Below are positions 52,501 through 64,000 of a stretch of 64,000 nucleotides of DNA, piece by piece. Both the position numbers and the translations under genes were made by a program. Within the stretch, counting starts at the first letter, position 1, and the number at the start of each line of letters is the position of its first letter. This stretch comes from Vitrella brassicaformis CCMP3155. Taxonomy: Eukaryota > Protista > Chromerida. The notes beneath the pieces are model-generated. The model searched no databases, was not told where the DNA came from, and saw nothing but the letters and a program-made list of their open reading frames with translations. The stretch spans positions 1 through 64,000 of the forward strand of contig CDMY01000218.1 of assembly GCA_001179505.1 (NCBI GenBank). The letters are read 5' to 3'.

Positions 52501-55500
52501 GGGAAGGGCTGGGGCTCGGCAGCTCGTCCTCGGCGGCCTCGGTCGCAGCTGAGAGACAGATGGACCAGCAGAGACAGACAACAGGTGGTGTGGTGTTCCG
52601 TGGCTGTGTGGACAGGACAGCGTACCCCATTTGGCGGCAGTTTCAGAGGTCATGAACTCGTAGCCGAGGTCGTCGAGTGAGTCGACGGGGCCGCCCCGGT
52701 TGGGGCCGCGGATGAGCTCCTCGAGATGCTCGCCTTGCAGCGCCACCCAACGGAACGCACCGGCATCACGCTGATGGATCGACACACGAATGAACCACAC
52801 ACACACACACACACGCGACAGAGACAGTGAGCTTTGGTTGGTCTCGGTGTGTGTGTCTGCATGTGTGTGTGTTGTGTTGTGTGGAGGTCTTCACCCACCT
52901 TGTCATTGAAGTACCAAAACTTGCGGAAGCGACCGTTGTAATACCCAACCTGCACACACGCACACACCCATCATGCGCACATGAGCTCAAGTCTCATGTG
53001 GATGCGTGTGTCTCCGCTTACCGCCCAGCTGTTGGCCCTGCCATTCCAGTAGACCTTCGAGAAGCTCCCCTGCCCACCCTCGGGCGCCACCGCTGACGAG
53101 CGGCGCTTCTTCAACGCAGCAGCTGACGCAGCACTCATCTTCTTCTCGCCCCCACGGTTGACAATCTTCTGGCTAGGCATCCAGTCGCCCCCCTCGTCCC
53201 CCTCACCCCCGCCCTCCTCTGTCTCACCCTCTCCGCCAGTCACCNNNNNNNNNNNNNNNNNNNNNNNNNNNNNNNNNNNNNNNNNNNNNNNNNNNNNNNN
53301 NNNNNNNNNNNNNNNNNNNNNNNNNNNNNNNNNNNNNNNNNNNNNNNNNNNNNNNNNNNNNNNNNNNNNNNNNNNNNNNNNNNNNNNNNNNNNNNNNNNN
53401 NNNNNNNNNNNNNNNNNNNNNNNNNNNNNNNNNNNNNNNNNNNNNNNNNNNNNNNNNNNNNNNNNNNNNNNNNNNNNNNNNNNNNNNNNNNNNNNNNNNN
53501 NNNNNNNNNNNNNNNNNNNNNNNNNNNNNNNNNNNNNNNNNNNNGCTGAGAGACAGATGGACCAGCAGGCAGAGACAGACAACAGGTGGTGTGGTGTTCC
53601 GTGGCTGTGTGGACAGGACAGCGTACCCCATTTGGCGGCAGTTTCAGAGGTCATGAACTCGTAGCCCAGGTCGTCGAGTGAGTCGACGGGTCCGCCCCGG
53701 TTGGGGCCGCGGATGAGCTCCTCGAGATGCTCGCCTTGCAGCGCCACCCAACGGAACGCACCCGCATCACGCTGATGGATGGACACACGAATGAACCACA
53801 CACACACACACACGACAGAGACGGTGAGCTTTGGTTGGTCTCGGTGTGTGTCTGTCGACATGTGTGTGTGTGTTGTGTGGCGGGGAGCTCTTCACCCACC
53901 TTGTCATTGAAGTACCAAAACTTGCGGAAGCGACCGTTGTAATACCCAACCTGCACACACGCACACACCCATCATGCGCACATGAGCTCAAGTCTCATGT
54001 GGATGCGTGTGTCTCCGCTTACCGCCCAGCTGTTGGCCCTGCCATTCCAGTAGACCTTCGAGAAGCTCCCCTGCCCGCCCTCTGGCGCCACCGCTGACGA
54101 GCGGCGCTTCTTCAACGCAGCAGCTGACGCAGCACTCATCTTCTTCTCGTCCCCACGGTTGACAATCTTCTGGCTAGGCATCCAGTCGCCCCCCTCATCC
54201 CCCTCACCCCCGCCCTCCTTTGTCTCAGCCTCTCCGCCAGTCACCCCGCCCCCGTCAGCAGCAGTCGCCGCCGCAGCGGCTGCCGCAGCAGCAGCCGCCT
54301 TCTTCTCACGCTCCTCCTTGCGAGCCGCCGCCGACTTGGTGGTCTTGGCCTTAGCCTTACCCTCGGACCTCGGCGGCGGGCTCGGCAGCGGCTCCTCCTT
54401 CACTGAGGCGGGGAGTGTGGGCGTGGGCGTGGGTGGGGGCGGGGTGGGGGAGGGCGGCATGGGGGTCATGCGGTCCTTGGCGTTGGCCGCCCGGATCTGC
54501 AGGCCCATCTGACGGATGGCATTGCTCCAGTTGCTGAGGTCGTTGTCGCCGCCGTCCAATGACCCCTCTGCCACCTCCAACTTGACCACCGCCCAGGGGT
54601 CCTCCCAGCCCGCTCCCGTGCCCACCACCGACCCGGGCGACTCCAGGCGGCCGCCAGGCGACAGGTTGAGCGCCCCGGCCTCGGTCTCGGCGGCCTTGAT
54701 GGCCTCTATGTCAGCCACAAACGTGGCGTGGGGGTCGTGACGCGCCAAAATCCGCTGTGCGGGGTGCACGTACTGGTCGTTGTCTTTGTCTGCATTGGCC
54801 CCCACCTTGCGACGCTTCGACTGGCGAGGGGGCGGCTTCTTGCGTGGCAGCGGGGGCAGGGGCGTGTTGGGCGCCTGCGCCTGGCCGGCCGGGGGCTCCT
54901 CCTCGGCGGGGAGTCCGCCAAAGGTGGGGAAGGGCGAGGGAGGGGGCGGCTCGGGGACAGGGAGCGCCGCGTACTGCGCCACCATGACGGCATCGTTCTC
55001 CCCCTCGGCGCTCGACTTGCTGGGTGAGGAGTTGACCATCTCGTGCTGGAACCGCTTGGACGGCGACATGTCCTCCAGCCGACCTGCCTGCATCAGCTGC
55101 GCTCGCCGGTTGCGCGTCAGCAGCCCGTCGTCACGGTCGCCCCGGAGGTGCCTGTCCTGCAGCAGGTCCGTGCGCAGACTCGCCAGCGCGCGCCGCTTGC
55201 GCGCCTCGGGCGACGGCAGGTCGAACAGGGACGACGGTACGCCGTGGTGGTACGCCGCGCGATGCCGCCTGTGTCTGGCCATGAGTGTTTCCTCCTCGCC
55301 GGCCGATGCGGAGGGGTGCGGGTCGGGCAAAAACAGGGGCGTGGGCGGCCCCCCTCCCCCTCGGTATCGGCGGCGAGACGAGAAGGGGTCGGGGGATGGC
55401 TCGGTGCACGGCGACAGGGAGGGGGATCCCTTCTTCTTGCGGTCCCACCCCGAGCCGCCGTACGGCGAGGGGCTGCCGCCCAGACGTCTGCGGCGGGAGG

Positions 55501-56871
55501 CGTTCTTGCGCGCGAAGTCCTCAGCAAGCTTCTGCGCCTCGTCGAAGCCCAGGCGCTGCGACACACACATGTACTAAGCATGAGCCGAGCCATCCACGGG
55601 TGTGTCTGGTGTGCGAGGGATGATTTGTTCTGTTTTGTGTGTGGTCTGCCTCCTCGCTGCCTGTGTGTGGTGCGCATACCCTGGCTGGAAACGTCTTCAT
55701 GCGACGTTTGCCGCTCTGGTCGTCAGTGAAGTTGACACGCCACTCCTGCACACGACCACACCAGAACGGACAGAGTGAGTGAGTGCCGTCACGTCTGTGT
55801 GTGTGTGTGTGTGTGTCGGATGGGGTACCTCTCTGGGCGGCCAGTAGTAGACCCCCCGTATCTGCGAAGTGGGGCAGTCGGGGTTGGTGCTGATCCCGCC
55901 GCCTCCGATAATGGGCGACAGCAGACGCCCCCCCGCACCCGGACTCTTGCGCCGAGCACTTCCCGCGTTCCCCCCACCCCCACCCGCACCGCCGCCCCCG
56001 CGACCCACACGCGACCCCGGCGTGTAGTCGTCATCGTTAGCCGGCTCCTCGTCCTGGTTCTCCATTTCCGCGTCGCTCTCCGACGCGTTGGCCTTGCGCG
56101 ACTGCCGCACCTTGCGGCCGGACCGGCGCGGCCCCTCGTACTTGTCATCCTCGTCGAGGGCTCGCGGCGATGGCGGAGGTGGAGGGACCGGGCTGGCCAC
56201 CTCCTTGGTGGTCTCCTCCTTGCAGGGTGTCACGTGCACTTGCGGGGGCGTGATGGTAGGGATGGGAGGGACGGGAGGGGCAGGGGGCATGTCGACATCG
56301 GCCTTGACCTCAGTGGTCTTCGTGTCCGGCGCCTCCCGCCCTGGTTGTTCCATGACGGATGGTGCTGGTGCGTCCTGGGACGACATGGGGGGTGGTGCGA
56401 CGTTTCTGGTCTCGGGGGAGTCTTCAGCAACGACAAAATTCACGGCAGGGTGGTGAGGATGAGGTTGCGGGTAAGGTGGTGGCTGGTTCTTGGGGCTTCC
56501 TTCTGCTTCGCCGAATGTGGCGCTGGAAGAGCAGTTGCTTAATAACGAAGGTAACACCTGGGCGCTGCTGCGGCTAATCTGAGAGGGCAACACACACACA
56601 CACAGCAGAGAAACAGAGACAAAAAGACAGACGTGAGATGGATGGGGGTGAATGCAGCCACGGGTCCGTGTATGGGGAAGCTGCAAGCGCCTGTCCCTGC
56701 CCTTCCCTCCCTCCTCATCCCAACCTCCCTCGCTCATGAGTCCTCTCAGCTACTCATCGGCTCTGCCCGGCCTGACTGCGCGCGCCAGTGCGAGACCCCT
56801 CCGCCTCCCCAACTCACCAGAGCACTGTCCTCTACGGCTGTCTGCTGATCCGCATGAGCGCCAGATGCCAT
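49503..56871 (-). CDS. ApiAP2-family transcription factor (two AP2-like domains, Pro-rich low complexity)
   Basis: AP2-1 spliced: QIRGVYYWPPREEWRVNFTDDQSGKRRMKTFPARRLGFDEAQKLAEDFARK. AP2-2-like: SKVYWNGRANSWAVGYYNGRFRKFWYFNDKRDAGAFRWVAL. The C-terminal region is repeated and interrupted by two gaps. The stop may instead be at 49633 in another frame. Confidence 0.8.
50340..54244 (-). repeat. Three tandem occurrences of the AP2-2-containing block, separated by N gaps (51491-51790, 53245-53544)
   Basis: The RDAGAFRWVALQGEHLEELIRG exon occurs near 51.2-51.3, 52.6-52.8 and 53.6-53.8 kb. The outer two look identical where they overlap; the middle one carries substitutions. Confidence 0.85.
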
Positions 56872-57754
56872 ATGAGCCTCTCCTCCGAACCCGAGAGCGC
56901 GAGACAACCCTCTCGGAGAGAAGTCGGGCGACCCGCAATGATTCACTCAGCCTCTCCGTCCAGCAACACGAGAGGGGGTCACAACGCCGTCCACAGGTGC
57001 TTCAGGCGATTGGTGCGGACCTCCTCCCTGCACCGAGCGATCCACCACAGAAAGCGATGCTCATTTTTCATTCCCGTGCCTCACGGGAGGCTCCGTGAGC
57101 TTCCCTGACCCTCAGGACGCTGCCGTGAATGCTCACCTGTTGGGAATGGCAGGGCCGCGATGGCCGTTGGCGGCAAAAGGGCAGAGAGTGGAGGCAAAGG
57201 GCTGCCTGCGATGGATCAAGAAGAGCCTGGCGCCCTGTCTCTACCCACACCAATGACCTCAGACGCGCCAGGTGTCCAAAAAGTAGGACCTCGCCTTGCT
57301 CCGGGGCTTAGGGCGCGCAATGGGCGCTCGCTTGCGCGAAACGATATTTTAGCTGGCTAAGCTCGCATCCGAGCGAAGGGAGCGTTTGCAGCATCTCTGC
57401 GTGTTTGGTGGCGCACTGCCGCAAGAAACCAAACCACACACCTCAGCTGGACTCGCACGCCGAGTGCGTGAAGCCGCGTCGCAGCGTGGAGATTTGGCCA
57501 GAGGTTCGTTCTCTCTCGCGTGACGCCCAAGGGGCACACAACAGCAAGAGGTGCGGTGAGCAGGCACTTTCTTTGTGGCGTAGATCAGACGCTGCATGAC
57601 ATGACAGGTGCTGCTGAGGAGCCACTGTGGACTCTGTGTGTGCTGGTGTGGTTGCGCGTGTGCCGTGCCGTACAGGCGGGCAGGCAGGTTTTTGTTTGCG
57701 GGAGCGTGGGCGTGATTGAGGATGCCAACCACTTCGGCAGACCTGGACTCAGGC

Positions 57755-59110
57755 ATGGGTGACCTCCGTGACCAGTAAGAAGCGGATCCACACAGACACT
57801 CCTGTACCATGTGTGTGTGCCACGATGGATGCCCCTTCTCTGCCTCTCCCTCTCCCTCTCTCTCTCTCCCCGTGTGTGTGTGGATGTGATGGCTGCAGGT
57901 ACATCTCCAAGATCCCCTCCTCGGCCTTCCTGACCCTCGCCCCCGACCTGCTCAAGGAGGGCTCCGTCTACGTCGCGCAGCTCTCCACCGTCGACGGCGG
58001 CCGCGACGCCTTCATCACCGAGGCGCGGAGCCTCGTCATCGAGAACGACGAGGCCACGACGCATGTGGACGTGCTGCAGAACCTCGAGGACCCCTCACAG
58101 TGGATGGTCATAGAGGCCTACAAGCGGGGCGGCGGGCCGGCCAGGGATGCGCAGGGCAAGCTCTCGGGGTTCCTCAAGCGCACCGAGAAGCTCATGAGCG
58201 TGCCGGAGGACATGAGCGAGCTCGAGATGATGGTGGAGTCGCCCGATCTGGCCGAGAAGCGGGACCTGACGACCGTGTACCTGGAGCAGGTGCAGTGCAA
58301 GCCCGGCATAGGCATGGACGACAAGCTGATCGAGGCCACGAGGACGCTCTCGAGGGCGGTCGGCGGCCACACCACCGCCCCCGACACACCCAGCACCACC
58401 ACCACCACCAGCCCCGCCAGCACCATGGCCAACGGCAGCAAGCCCGACGCACTGAGAGTGGTCCCCCCCTCCCCCGGCACCATAGCCGCCCTCGAGATGG
58501 TGCGCGACAAGGCCAACCGCTTCATCTTCAGCCTCTTCCTCCACTGTCGATCTGCCAACGACGCCATGGAGATCAGGCAGGGCCGCGACTTCCAGGCCTG
58601 GGCCGAAGCGGTCGCACCCTACCTCGACGGCGGGGCCAAGGTCTACTACTACCGCTCCGTCATCCCCTCTGCAGACAAGAGCCCCATCCCAGTGCGGGCC
58701 GCCGTGCCCTCAGCGGAGCTCAAGCGGCTGCCTGTGAGGGACAGCTCCTACTGGGAGCCGCAGAGCGACGGGACGGCCGTGATTATGGACGACGAGAATC
58801 TGCTGCCGTACAGCGACGAGCTCAAGAAGCGGTACCAGAGCTACCTCGACTACAAGAATGCCATTGTCGAGAAGGAGGGGTCGCTGGAGCGGTTTGCCCA
58901 GGGGTATCGGCTGTATGGCTTCAACAGGGTGGAGGGGGGGTCGCGGGGGAAGGGGTGGCTGCTGCGCGAGTGGCTGCCGGCCGCCAAGGCCGTCACGCTC
59001 ATGGGCGACTTCAACGACTGGAACCGGGAGAGCCACCCACTCGTCAGCGACGATTTTGGCAGGTGGACCCTCTTCCTCCCGGACGATAGGAAGACCGGTA
59101 AGGCCATTCT

Positions 59111-59141
<31 letters not shown>

Positions 59142-62100
59142 GGATGGATGGATGGATGGATGGCACGTGTATTGTTTCAGGTGAGTGGGCGTTGCAGCAC
59201 AAGTGCAAGGTGAAGCTGCACATCCAAGGCAGCGACGACGAGTGGTTCGACCGCATCCCCGCATGGACACGACTCGCCTGGCACTCGGCCACCACCAACC
59301 TCTTCGACGCCATCATCTGGACGCCCAAGACCCCGGAGAAGTACACCCCCAAGCACCCCCGCCCTCCCCGCCCCTCCACTCTCAAGATCTACGAGGCCCA
59401 CGTCGGCGTCAGCTCGCTGGAGGAGAAGATCGGCACCTATGTGGAGTTCATCGACGAGGTGCTGCCGAGGGTGGCGCGGCTGGGGTACAACGCCATCCTG
59501 CTCATCGGCGTGCAGGAGCACGCCTACTATGCCAGCATGGGATTCCATCCCACAAACCTTTTCGCGCCGTCCTCTCGGTTCGGCAGCCCGGAGGAGCTCA
59601 AACAGCTGGTGAGAACCACAAGACTTCGCTCACACACGCACAGAGAGAGAGAGTGCTGTGTGTGTGGGTGGCAGATCGACATTGCGCATGGGTACGGCTT
59701 GGTGGTGATGATGGACGTGGTGCACTGCCACGTGTCGACCAACGCCCTGGACGGCCTCAACCTGATGGACGGCAGCGAGGGCTGCTACCTGCATGAGGGG
59801 CTCAGAGGGCTCAACCCGGCATGGGACTGCAGGCTATTCAACTACAAGCAGGTGGGGACTGGACTGGCCCCAGACAGACAGACACAATCACACACGCAGA
59901 GAGAGGGAGGGAGAGATGGATGGAATGGAGATGGATCCATGTGTGTGTGGTGTGTGCTGTGTGGTGTGTGCAGTGGGAGGTGACGCGCTTCCTGCTGTCC
60001 AACCTGCGGTACTTCATCGACGAGTTCATGGTGGACGGCTTCAGGTTCGTCGGCGTCACATCGATGATCTACAAGCACCAGGGCATCTGCGCTAAGTTCA
60101 CCGGTTCGTTCGCACGCCACCCACCCCACCCCACCCACAGAGAGAGGGAGGGAGGGAGCGAACGGCGGGCAATTTCCACCCACCCTGTCTGTCTGTCTGT
60201 CTGTCTGTGTGTTAAATGCCCCAGGTGACTACGCACAGTACTTCGGTTTTGACAGCGACGAGGAGGCCATCACGTACCTGACGCTGGCCAACGAGCTGGT
60301 GCACACGCTGCTGCCCGACCACGGCATCACCATCGCAGAGGAGACCAGCAACATACCCACTCTCTGCAAACCCGTCGCCAAGGGCGGCATCGGATTCGAC
60401 TACAGACTCGCCATGGAGAAGGCCAATGCGTGGAGGCTGCTGGTGAGGGTGTGTGTGAGTCAGGCACCACACACAGACATGCAGACCCACACAGAGAGAG
60501 CGCCATTTCTCTCGTCGTGTGTGTGTTGTGTGTTAGGCAAAGCGCCGCCGCGACGAGGAGTGGGACTTCGAGGAGCTGGTGCAGACGCTGACAGGGCGCC
60601 GGAAGGGCGAGAAGTGCATCACCATGGTCGAGTCCAAGGAGCAGTGCCTCACCGCCAAACGGCCCCTCCTCGTCGCCATGTTTGCCTGGGAGTCCCTCCA
60701 CACCCACGCCGTCGGCGGCGTCGCCCCACACGTCACCGAGCTCGCCGCGGGGCTCCAGCGGCTCGGCCACGAGGTGCATGTCTTCGTGCGCACCACGCAG
60801 GGCGGCAACTCCCACAGGGTCTTCTATGGGGTGCACTACCACGAGTGCCAGTTCGGGCAGAACAACGACTTCGTGCAGGAGATGGTCAACATGTGCGACT
60901 CCTTCGTGTGGTCGATGGACCAGTCCGAGAACTTCATGAACGAGACCTACCAGATCACACACGCCCACGACTGGCTCGCCGGCAAGGCACTCGCCAAGGC
61001 CAAGCTCTCCGGACACAGAGCCGTCATGACGATGCACTCAACCGAGTTCGGCCGGTGCGGCAACAACGCCTATGGCGGCCAGTCGGGGCGTATCCGCGAC
61101 ATCGAGGCGGAGGCCTGCCACGTCAGCGACCGAGTCATTTGTGTTTCGGGGGTGCTTGCACAGGTACGTACGTCGTATGCGTGTTTGTGGAGCAGTCGGG
61201 TGAACCCACGCACATGGCCCTCTCTCTCCCTCTGTGTGTGTGTGTGTGTGTGTGTGGACTGGTCGATGCGCAGGAGGTGGTGGGTCAGTACGGGATTCAC
61301 GAGGGCAAGATCAAGGTCATCTACAACGGCATCCACGCCGAGCAGTTCGACGGCGAGGAGGACGCCGGCGCCATCAAGGGCAAGTACGGCATCGGCGCGA
61401 TGGAGCCCACCATCCTGTTCGTTGGCCGCATGGCCGTCCAGAAGGGCCCCGACCTGCTCGTCGAGGCCATCCCGATGATTCTCAACATGCGCAACGACTG
61501 CAAGTTCCTCATGGTCGGCGACGGGCACATGAAGGCCGGCCTCGAGGGCAGGACCCAGCAGCTCGGCGTGGGACACGCCGTCAGGTGGCTCGGCAAAAAG
61601 GGAGGCGGCGAGCTCAAGTCCCTTTTCAAGGTGCGCACGCCACGCCACGCCCGACCCCACCCACCCTCCCTCCCTGACACAACCAGAGACGCCTCACTCA
61701 CCACAAACCCTCCTCTGTGCTTTTGTGTCTGTGTGTATGGATGGATGGATGGACGGATGTCAGGCGTGTGACGCCGTAGTGGTGCCGTCGCGCAACGAGC
61801 CGTTCGGCATTGTGGTGCTAGAGGCCTGGTCGGCGAGCAAGCCAGTGGTGGCCACCACTTGTGGCGGGCCGCGCGACTTCGTCTCGCCCGACAACGACGG
61901 GTGGCTGGTGGACCCTGAGCCGGGCTCCATCGCCTGGGGCGTGTGCGAGATTTTGAAGAACTTCGCCCACAGCCAGTGGATGGGCACCCGGGGGCGCGTC
62001 AAGGCGGCCTTCAACTTCTCGTGGGACACCATCGCCCGCCAGACCCGTGACGTCTACTACGAGCAGATGAACCGCCACGACGCCCCGTACGCCAGCTACC

Positions 62101-62954
62101 ACCTGGGCGACGCCACACTGGCCCACGTGCTGATGGGCTCGGCCATGTACAACAACATGGGTGTCTTCGACCCCAACGAGGGCGCCGCGCGCGGCCTGGC
62201 CCTGCACAAGATGATCCGCCTGTTTGGCTGCGGGCTGGGCGGCGACGGGTACATGACCTTCATGGGCAACGAGTTCGGCCACCCGGAGTGGATCGACATG
62301 CCGCGGGCGGGCAACGGGTGGTCGCACTCACACGCGCGCCGCCGATGGGACCTGGCGGACAACAAGGACCTCAAGTTCAAGAACTTCGAGTTCTTCGAGG
62401 CGTGTTTGTTGCGCTGGGAGAGCAAGCTCCAGTGGATGGCCGCCCCCTCCGAGAAGCTCATCGTCTGCATGCCGAGCGACAAGGTCGTCGCCTTCGAGCG
62501 GGGCCCCTGCCTCTTCCTCTTCAACTTCCACCCCACGGCCTGGTACAGCCAGTACCGAATCGGCACCTCATCCACCACTCCCCTCCTCGCAGCACTCGAC
62601 ACCGACGAGGGCCGGTTCGGCGGCCTTGACCGCCACCAGGACGCGCACCTGAAGCCGTTCCCCATCGGGGAGGGCTGGAATGAGTGCGATGGGTCGATCT
62701 TGGTCGACCTTCCAGCCCGCACCGGCCTGGTGCTGGCGCCGGTGGACGTGCTCGAGAAGGCGCGCCGGACGGCGGTCAAGGGCGAGGAGGTCCTGGCCAT
62801 GGACGTGGACGACTTCGTGTCGTCCCTGCCGAGGTGGAAGATCAGGGCCAACGGGGCGGCGCCCGCCACCAGTGGCAGCGTCGGCACGGCCATCAAGGGC
62901 GGCGTGTCGTCGATGCCTGTGGGGGGCGTACGGCCCATGAAGAATGGCTTCTGA
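57755..62954 (+). CDS. Fusion protein: ABM-like x2 + CBM48/GH13_8 branching-enzyme-like fold split by an inserted GT4 glycosyltransferase
   Basis: Branching-enzyme motifs: [73 protein letters not shown], then [16 protein letters not shown] and VVAFERG...FNFHP. GT4 motifs: [45 protein letters not shown]. The introns are all GT-AG and in frame. Confidence 0.92.
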
Positions 62955-63261: not shown

Positions 63262-64000
63262 TGCGTGGTTTCTTTCTCTGTCTATCTACCTATCTTTTTT
63301 CTGACGGACAGACAGCCAGACGGGCGGGGATGCAGGCAGGCAGACACGCCGGCATGCCGGTAGGCAAGTTTCTGGGGTCTGCCTGCCTGCCTGTCTGTTT
63401 GGATGGGGCCCTTCTGTGTGTCACGTGCTGTGGTGTCATGTGTCCTGTGTCCTGTGTGGCCCATTGAGGGTGGGCTGGTGAGAGCCAGGGAGGTGGTCAC
63501 TTGACGATGCGTCAATGGTGTGAAAAAAATGAATGGATGGATGGATGGATGGTGCCGAAAGGTCATTGGACCTTATCCGCAGCCAGACGGACAGACAGAC
63601 AGACAGACACCAAGGTAGCGAGCCAGTGTGTAGAGAGAGATGCACCCCACCCTCAGATGCAATCAATGCCTGCAATGCCACTCACGCCACCCACCATGGG
63701 GCGTTTTGTAGTTCTCGCGGCCCCCTCTCTCTTGCCGGGCGGGCGGGCGGGGGTGCGATTGAACGGTTAAGTCCATCCACCGTGTGGCGCTGTGTGTGTG
63801 GCTGACGTGTATGATAGCCAGACAGACAGACTGACGGGTGTCGGTCGGTGGCTGCCTGTGTTGTGCTTGTGGGAGGCAGGCAGGTGTGCTTGTGGGAGGC
63901 AGGCAGGTGCGGAGCGGACACTTTCAAGAAAGAGGCGTCGATGTATGGATGGAGGGATGGATGGGTAAAATGGGTGCGTGAGTGAGTCTTTTATGGCGGG

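Follow-up and report, generated by a model that had tools for sequence, protein, structure and literature searches.

The first 64,000 nucleotides of contig CDMY01000218.1 of the chromerid Vitrella brassicaformis CCMP3155 (the window, from whose first letter all coordinates are counted) contain, at 57.4-63.0 kb on the + strand, an intron-rich gene with ten exons, nine of them coding, in which a branching-enzyme (BE) fold is interrupted by a complete GT4 glycosyltransferase. The exon set was derived by reading canonical GT-AG introns from the sequence and gives a protein of 1459 amino acids (aa); two codons before its first ATG (57722) there is a stop in the same frame. The last 1448 residues match the public V. 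brassicaformis CCMP3155 protein CEL94386.1 (A0A0G4EG74) letter for letter, so that the public annotation uses identical exons; its ATG, at 57755, lies 11 residues later. Residue numbers follow the public 1448-aa protein, here called P0001. From the N-terminus, the domain order is a weakly ABM-like region, CBM48, the GH13_8 barrel as far as conserved region IV, the complete GT4 domain, the rest of the barrel and an alpha-amylase C domain (Table 1). Pfam was run on the whole protein, and the five domain matches listed all score above the curated cut-offs.

The GH13 sequence runs to MVESKEQCL, ending with Leu762 (60648-60650), and GT4 begins at 60651, inside exon 60537-61163. GT4 extends to 62099, and the barrel resumes with HLGDATLAH at 62100, inside exon 61764-62954. 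Exon 8 aligns to rice BEI, and the resumption in exon 10 aligns against LVGDKTLAFWLMDAAMY of 7P43, the alignment to 7P43 and 4BZY beginning at query residue 113 of that exon. Judged against solved branching enzymes, the break falls exactly between ESHDQ(S/A)(I/L) and VGDK(T/S)(I/L)AF. These flanking segments are contiguous in ordinary branching enzymes; the insert replaces nothing.

Logan contigs from RNA-type sequencing runs are spliced and directly support several introns of the gene. X6 record 16 joins exons 1-2-3-4-5. For X1 record 3 (1423 nt), joints are listed at 59608/59675 and 60442/60537, and the piece lengths (86+177+130 = 393, then 218, ~625 and ~185) fit full splicing from exon 4 into exon 9; it thus covers GH13 regions I-IV, passes through the GH13-to-GT4 junction and includes over half of GT4. 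Across this first junction, the gene is transcribed as a single mRNA. The second junction is crossed by RNA-run contigs X1 record 5 and X2 record 13. The joints of introns 5, 6, 8 and 9 were inferred from contig arithmetic, bin depth and the public model, repeat-rich intron ends having been filtered. The introns and flanks of the gene contain (CA)n/(TG)n tracts and GGAT/GGATGG repeats (59102-59170, 61226-61256, 61738-61757, 63533-63550), which sit close to 3′ splice sites and masked several splice joints in the read analysis. A preliminary description of the locus, made from the DNA letters alone, had already placed both junctions at these positions, inside exons, and had regarded the gene as a single unit. 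Both statements hold, the second through the spliced RNA contigs, the stop-free translation and the match to CEL94386.1.

Table 1. Features of the V. brassicaformis fusion gene and its product. Positions are those of the window; residues are those of P0001.
Feature	Position	Strand	Residues	Evidence
Exons 1-5	57371?-57550 (non-coding), 57676-57774, 57899-59097, 59181-59608, 59675-59851	+		GT-AG reading
Exons 6-10	59974-60103, 60225-60442, 60537-61163, 61274-61630, 61764-62954	+		GT-AG reading
Non-coding first exon (5′ untranslated region; 5′ end provisional)	57371..57550	+		Spliced contig X6 record 16 joins 57550 to 57676 (GT..AG)
Coding sequence of the BE2::GT4 fusion, 9 coding exons (ATG 57722, stop 62952-62954)	57722..62954	+		Stop-free translation
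N-terminal region, lineage-specific	57755..58913	+	1-345	Weak ABM / ferredoxin-like signal
CBM48 starch/glycogen-binding module (spans intron 59098-59180)	58914..59266	+	346-435	Pfam
CBM_48 (PF02922)			346-435	Pfam E 1.5e-14
GH13_8 (beta/alpha)8 barrel part 1, through region IV	59267..60650	+	436-762	Alignment to rice BEI and human GBE1; Foldseek
Alpha-amylase			499-572	Pfam E 2.6e-8
Val634 at GH13 nucleophile Asp position (region II, GFRFVGVTS vs GFRFDGVTS)	60049..60051	+	634	Alignment
Glu690, region III general acid/base, kept (IAEE)	60338..60340	+	690	Alignment
Lys758-Glu759 replacing region IV His-Asp (ESKEQ vs ESHDQ)	60636..60641	+	758-759	Alignment
Complete GT4 (GT-B) domain, 402 residues (introns 61164-61273, 61631-61763)	60651..62099	+	763-1164	Pfam, homologues, model DSSP
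Glyco_transf_4			783-956	Pfam E 2e-25, 90.2 bits vs 28.5-bit cut-off
Gly784-Gly785, N-terminal glycine motif	60714..60719	+	784-785	At least 98% conserved in 60 GT4 sequences
H866-A-H868-D869-W870 motif	60960..60974	+	866-870	Alignment of 60 GT4 sequences
Glycos_transf_1			967-1130	Pfam E 1.2e-37, 129.5 bits vs 26.4-bit cut-off
Arg985 ... Lys990 (GRMAVQKG), phosphate-binding R/K motif	61427..61444	+	985-990	Alignment of 60 GT4 sequences
Glu1064-x7-Glu1072 motif	61797..61823	+	1064-1072	Alignment of 60 GT4 sequences
GH13_8 barrel part 2, alpha7 to alpha8	62100..62477	+	1165-1290	Alignment to 7P43 and 4BZY; Foldseek
Alpha-amylase C-terminal all-beta domain	62478..62750	+	1291-1381	Pfam PF02806; branching-enzyme alignment
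Alpha-amylase_C (PF02806)			1291-1378	Pfam E 9.4e-10
C-terminal tail, ~67 aa	62751..62951	+		No recognised domain (Pfam)

CBM48, barrel, C domain and all four conserved regions are recognisable beside the canonical GH13_8 enzymes rice BEI (3AMK/7ML5) and human GBE1 (4BZY). Unlike these, the Vitrella protein has Val634 in place of the Asp nucleophile, Lys758-Glu759 in place of the region IV His-Asp pair, and the 402-residue GT4 domain in the beta7-alpha7 loop; only the acid/base Glu690 is kept. The barrel has a branching-enzyme fold but, judged by these residues, cannot be classed as an active branching enzyme. The loss extends across the family of fusion proteins described below, 14 representatives of which were aligned with 6 unfused BE-like proteins. 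In all 14, two or more of the three carboxylates needed for catalysis (Asp nucleophile, Glu acid/base, region IV Asp) are missing, as is the region IV His, and the nucleophile position is occupied by V, Q, E, L, T, P and once by D. Five of the six unfused proteins, canonical branching enzymes, keep D/E/D and the His. The sixth, P0086 (677 aa), does not; it is an unfused BE-like pseudoenzyme with Arg at the nucleophile position and Glu at that of the region IV Asp. Replacements as variable as those in the fusions are what relaxed selection on catalysis would be expected to produce. Because the fold is kept while the catalytic residues are lost in Vitrella and its relatives, the barrel most likely survives as an alpha-glucan-binding scaffold.

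An AlphaFold2 model of residues 325-1385 (1061 residues, ending before the C-terminal tail), computed from a 45-row alignment, has a predicted local distance difference test score (pLDDT) of 93.8 and a predicted template modelling (TM) score of 0.88. Foldseek superposes it on rice BEI (7ML5) with a target-normalised TM score of 0.93 and a root-mean-square deviation of 1.5 Å, and on human GBE1 with a TM score of 0.95. The alignment extends over all 1061 residues and places both barrel halves around a gap of ~400 residues. The refolding of the split barrel around the insert, raised in the preliminary description, is thus borne out in prediction. According to DSSP, strand beta7 comprises model residues 426-430 and the first GT4 strand, 445-449, follows within ~15 residues, while the last GT4 helix (815-829) leads back to a barrel helix at 847-852. 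In the model, GT4 is accordingly inserted in the beta7-alpha7 loop. In TIM barrels, this loop is on the face that carries the active site and the substrate groove.

The GT4 domain shows the opposite pattern of conservation to the barrel. Both of its Pfam domains score above cut-off, and the E-x7-E, R/K and Gly-Gly motifs of a retaining GT-B enzyme are present. We compared 60 GT4 domains from fusions, red algae, a glaucophyte and bacteria. At least 98% of them are identical to Vitrella at 84 positions, which include G784-G785, H866/H868-D869-W870, R985, K990, E1064, E1072 and G1086-G1087. The fusions have a different residue fixed at just two positions. The R/K and E-x7-E motifs, read as intact in the preliminary description, are thus intact in the wider alignment as well. 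Among fusions, GT4 has a mean pairwise identity of 0.56, whereas CBM48, the C domain and both parts of the barrel lie at 0.31-0.34. As all motifs of a retaining nucleoside diphosphate-sugar transferase are kept, we infer that the GT4 part is active. The best NCBIfam model is TIGR02149 (glgA_Coryne/GlgM subfamily), with 149.4 bits against a cut-off of 302.4, and identity with GlgM (maltose-1-phosphate synthase) was rejected on this score; GlgM is likewise a GT4 enzyme and acts in alpha-glucan metabolism, but its structure (6TVP) matches at only 3.6e-19.

The Vitrella gene is a member of a family found across Myzozoa. A search with exon 10 against 1.84 billion representatives returned ~20 clusters matching across both the GT4 C-terminus and the resumed barrel. 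The fusion occurs in Toxoplasma gondii (1707 aa, XP_002369745.1 / EPR57846.1, annotated as 'glycosyltransferase' or '1,4-alpha-glucan branching enzyme') and Hammondia, in Cryptosporidium ryanae and C. felis, in the gregarines Selenidium and Digyalum, and in Symbiodinium and Effrenium (Symbiodiniaceae); its possible presence in coccidia and dinoflagellates had been anticipated in the preliminary description. Pfam confirms the same domain order in these relatives, and in 15 of 15 aligned fusion sequences the insert occupies the same alignment columns, between an ESHDQ-like region IV and a VGDK-like segment. A preprint of 2 October 2026 describes the fusion as a myzozoan synapomorphy, 'BE2alpha-GT4-BE2beta', common to apicomplexans, chromerids and dinoflagellates (bioRxiv 10.64898/2026.09.25.754361). 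The Vitrella gene belongs to this family and shares its domain order, its insertion point after region IV and the grouping of its GT4 domains, differing in nothing essential. The same preprint reports that mutations of starchless Chromera velia are spread over the whole fusion, which is required for starch synthesis, citing a submitted paper (bioRxiv 10.64898/2026.09.25.754361). The Toxoplasma gene called SBE2 in PMC9241709 (TGME49_209960) may or may not be this fusion.

Architecture, distribution and genetics are thus already known. We had considered the architecture as a candidate novelty and rejected it, given the preprint and the presence of the fusion in other genomes. The preliminary description saw in the gene an unusual component of chromerid and apicomplexan amylopectin metabolism, and allowed that an architecture already characterised would not be new; it is instead a general myzozoan fusion already in print (bioRxiv 10.64898/2026.09.25.754361). 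Our additions are the loss of GH13 catalytic residues in the whole family, the strong conservation of an apparently intact GT4, a confident model of the refolded barrel and the bacterial GH57/phosphorylase neighbourhood described below. The text of the preprint contains no occurrence of 'GH57', 'inactive' or 'nucleophile'; the loss of GH13 residues across the family and the bacterial GH57 neighbourhood are therefore not discussed there.

Free-standing GT4 proteins share 54-59% identity with the inserted domain across 95-99% of its length. These are found in red algae (Porphyridium, Pyropia, Gracilaria, Gracilariopsis, Cyanidium, Compsopogon, Rhodella and Madagascaria), in the glaucophyte Gloeochaete, and in a large set of bacterial proteins of ~389 aa (54-58% identity; Planctomycetaceae, Pirellulales and SAR324 are named examples). 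They share all motifs with the Vitrella domain but are separate proteins. The algal forms carry N-terminal extensions of 55-283 residues; eight of these were scanned, and neither starch-binding modules nor any other recognised domain was found in them.

Gene neighbourhoods were inspected on six bacterial contigs (L001-L006). On two of them (L001, L003) the order is a GT4/5-like gene, a GH57 branching enzyme (Glyco_hydro_57 + BE_C), GT4, alpha-glucan phosphorylase and GH57, and on two more (L002, L005) a glycogen phosphorylase lies within three genes of GT4. The preliminary description had likened the insert to a prokaryotic glycogen-cluster GT4 type, and these four of six contigs bear this out for the family. 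The 590-aa GT4/5-like gene on L001 (6473-8245; Planctomycetaceae metagenome-assembled genome JAJFVE010000112.1), two genes upstream of GT4, falls on a long branch within the same bacterial GT4 clade, so that two paralogues of the family flank the GH57 branching enzyme. In Mycobacterium, Rv3032 is a GT4 alpha-1,4-glucosyltransferase whose gene adjoins that of the GH57 enzyme Rv3031; the pairing resembles these bacterial GH57-GT4 neighbourhoods.

The phylogeny of GT4 was assessed with a quick maximum-likelihood tree, supported by the Shimodaira-Hasegawa-like approximate likelihood ratio test (SH-aLRT) only (values marked *). The tree is effectively unrooted because one intended outgroup proved to belong to the family and the other sits on a branch of length 10. 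All fusions fall to the same side of a 100* branch, and the sampled bacteria form a separate 99* clade. The smallest starred set that contains Vitrella (100*) comprises 14 fusions, one fusion fragment and one misplaced long-branch outgroup; between Vitrella and Toxoplasma, GT4 identity is 70%. The branching order among red algae, glaucophyte, bacteria and fusions is not settled, and the red-algal and glaucophyte GT4s are as close to the fusions as the bacterial ones. A direct bacterial donor is consequently not indicated, and the lateral origin from prokaryotes that the preliminary description had thought possible does not find support. The preprint favours a cryptophyte or red-algal origin of GT4 (bootstrap 71), or else a glaucophyte one (bootstrap 58) (bioRxiv 10.64898/2026.09.25.754361); this support is as weak as that of our own tree.

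Our preferred interpretation, to which we assign a probability of about 60%, is that GT4 is an active glucosyltransferase and that a dead branching-enzyme scaffold, together with CBM48, keeps it on alpha-glucan. That the protein acts as a glucan synthase or primer, as the preliminary description proposed, is plausible. A eukaryotic GH13_8 branching enzyme with CBM48, TIM barrel and C domain would have acquired a whole GT4 domain in the loop after beta-strand 7. The dead barrel and CBM48 would hold a glucan chain beside the GT4 cleft, where glucose might be transferred from UDP- or ADP-glucose, priming or elongating alpha-1,4 chains. These chains would then be branched by a separate, active branching enzyme (BE1, GH13_9).

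Several points weigh against this interpretation. The nearest solved structures by sequence, MshA, cyanobacterial sucrose-phosphate synthase, BshA, Pyrococcus glycogen synthase and GlgM, have similar and modest E-values (8e-24 to 4e-19), and donor and acceptor are therefore not assignable by homology; no biochemically characterised member of the inserted GT4's family was found in the literature. Two of the six bacterial contigs (L004, L006) have no glucan genes in the flank examined. The Vitrella barrel retains the acid/base Glu and is 47% identical to canonical branching enzymes versus 36% to other fusions, and it may have some residual, non-canonical activity. Finally, in Chromera a nonsense allele whose product is cut down to CBM48 and a few residues of BE2 is reported still to support starch at up to 20% of the normal level, and the authors of the preprint see BE2 and GT4 as regulators of an essential function of the N-terminal CBM48 (bioRxiv 10.64898/2026.09.25.754361).

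On that last view, GT4 and the barrel would be folding or substrate-sensing modules that control the presentation of the CBM48 region and catalyse nothing. The starch still made by the truncated Chromera product, which has no GT4, favours it, as does a barrel that looks clearly catalytically dead. Sensors, however, need no intact catalytic residues, yet the GG, HxHDW, R/K and E-x7-E motifs show at least 98% conservation from bacteria through algae to the fusions, and GT4 is conserved almost twice as strongly as the remainder of the protein. A purely structural or sensing function would hardly account for this pattern, and the drop in starch by at least 80% in the truncated allele would fit the loss of an important activity. 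We consider a non-catalytic regulator quite unlikely.

GT4 might also be active without elongating glucan directly. It would then make a soluble donor or primer, such as maltose-1-phosphate or a sugar-phosphate disaccharide, or glucosylate a protein primer, and the barrel would serve only to localise it to starch. GT4 enzymes are chemically diverse (PMC11046441), TIGR02149 is the best NCBIfam model, and sucrose-phosphate synthase, MshA, BshA and GlgM are among the nearest solved structures. The TIGR02149 score of 149 bits is, however, far under the 302-bit cut-off, and the enzymes encoded beside the bacterial relatives, branching enzyme and phosphorylase, act on polymers, which makes this alternative unlikely in our view. 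An assembly or gene-model artefact merging two neighbouring genes is scarcely conceivable and was rejected, nothing having emerged in its favour. It is effectively refuted by the position of both junctions within exons, by RNA contigs that cross junction 1, in spliced form, and junction 2, and by the same insertion at the same position in at least 14 protein clusters from independent genomes and transcriptomes.

Cytosolic starch is stored by apicomplexan parasites (in Toxoplasma cysts and Cryptosporidium oocysts), by chromerids and by dinoflagellates, and to our knowledge the fusion has no animal counterpart. Our data point to a branching-enzyme half that is a pseudoenzyme scaffold in all members of the family, and to a GT4 half that is under strong selection and has relatives in bacterial glycogen clusters. 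Together, this yields a concrete, assayable hypothesis that contrasts with the regulator model of the preprint. A more speculative and rather doubtful extension is that this GT4 represents an ancient class of enzymes, as yet uncharacterised, that synthesise or prime alpha-glucan as obligate partners of branching-enzyme-type proteins. The domain is often encoded beside a GH57 branching enzyme in Planctomycetota-like bacteria, stands free in red algae and glaucophytes, and is welded into a dead GH13_8 enzyme in Myzozoa. If the extension were true, the myzozoan GT4 could be the missing starch-initiation activity of organisms without a classical glycogenin-primed pathway.

Other combinations of these modules also occur. 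The tandem BE2-GT5 fusion of dinoflagellates (bioRxiv 10.64898/2026.09.25.754361) resembles the Vitrella protein in that a branching enzyme and a glucan-synthase-type GT-B module share one polypeptide, but its SSI/SSII-like GT5 follows a complete branching enzyme in tandem, whereas the GT4 of Vitrella is inserted. An example of it, a Polarella glacialis protein (P0021; CAE8637345.1, 1455 aa), has CBM48, GH13 and Alpha-amylase_C followed by a GT5 starch-synthase domain. A single open reading frame (ORF) on a Logan contig (P0002, 1938 aa) encodes a complete branching enzyme and then a second CBM48 with a GT4-interrupted branching enzyme, that is, BE and BE::GT4 in tandem.

Compared with the other fusions, the Vitrella protein has the barrel least diverged from canonical branching enzymes and an N-terminal extension of its own, of ~330 aa. 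The ABM-like signal of this region is below the Pfam cut-off (E 0.005), and atlas feature matches to ABM proteins score 0.78, a lead only. Within residues 1-345, only ~275-340 align with Toxoplasma and Hammondia (phmmer against the family), and a single-sequence AlphaFold2 model is uninformative (pLDDT 34.6).

Elsewhere in the window, two ORFs on the - strand within 52971-55570 (52971-53861 and 53972-55570) share a C-terminal end of ~75 aa (...SQKIVNRG.EKKMSAASAAALKKRRSS...HMRLELMCA). A run of N at ~53.2-53.6 kb lies between or within them, and the pair is probably a tandem duplicate that this assembly gap has produced or magnified.

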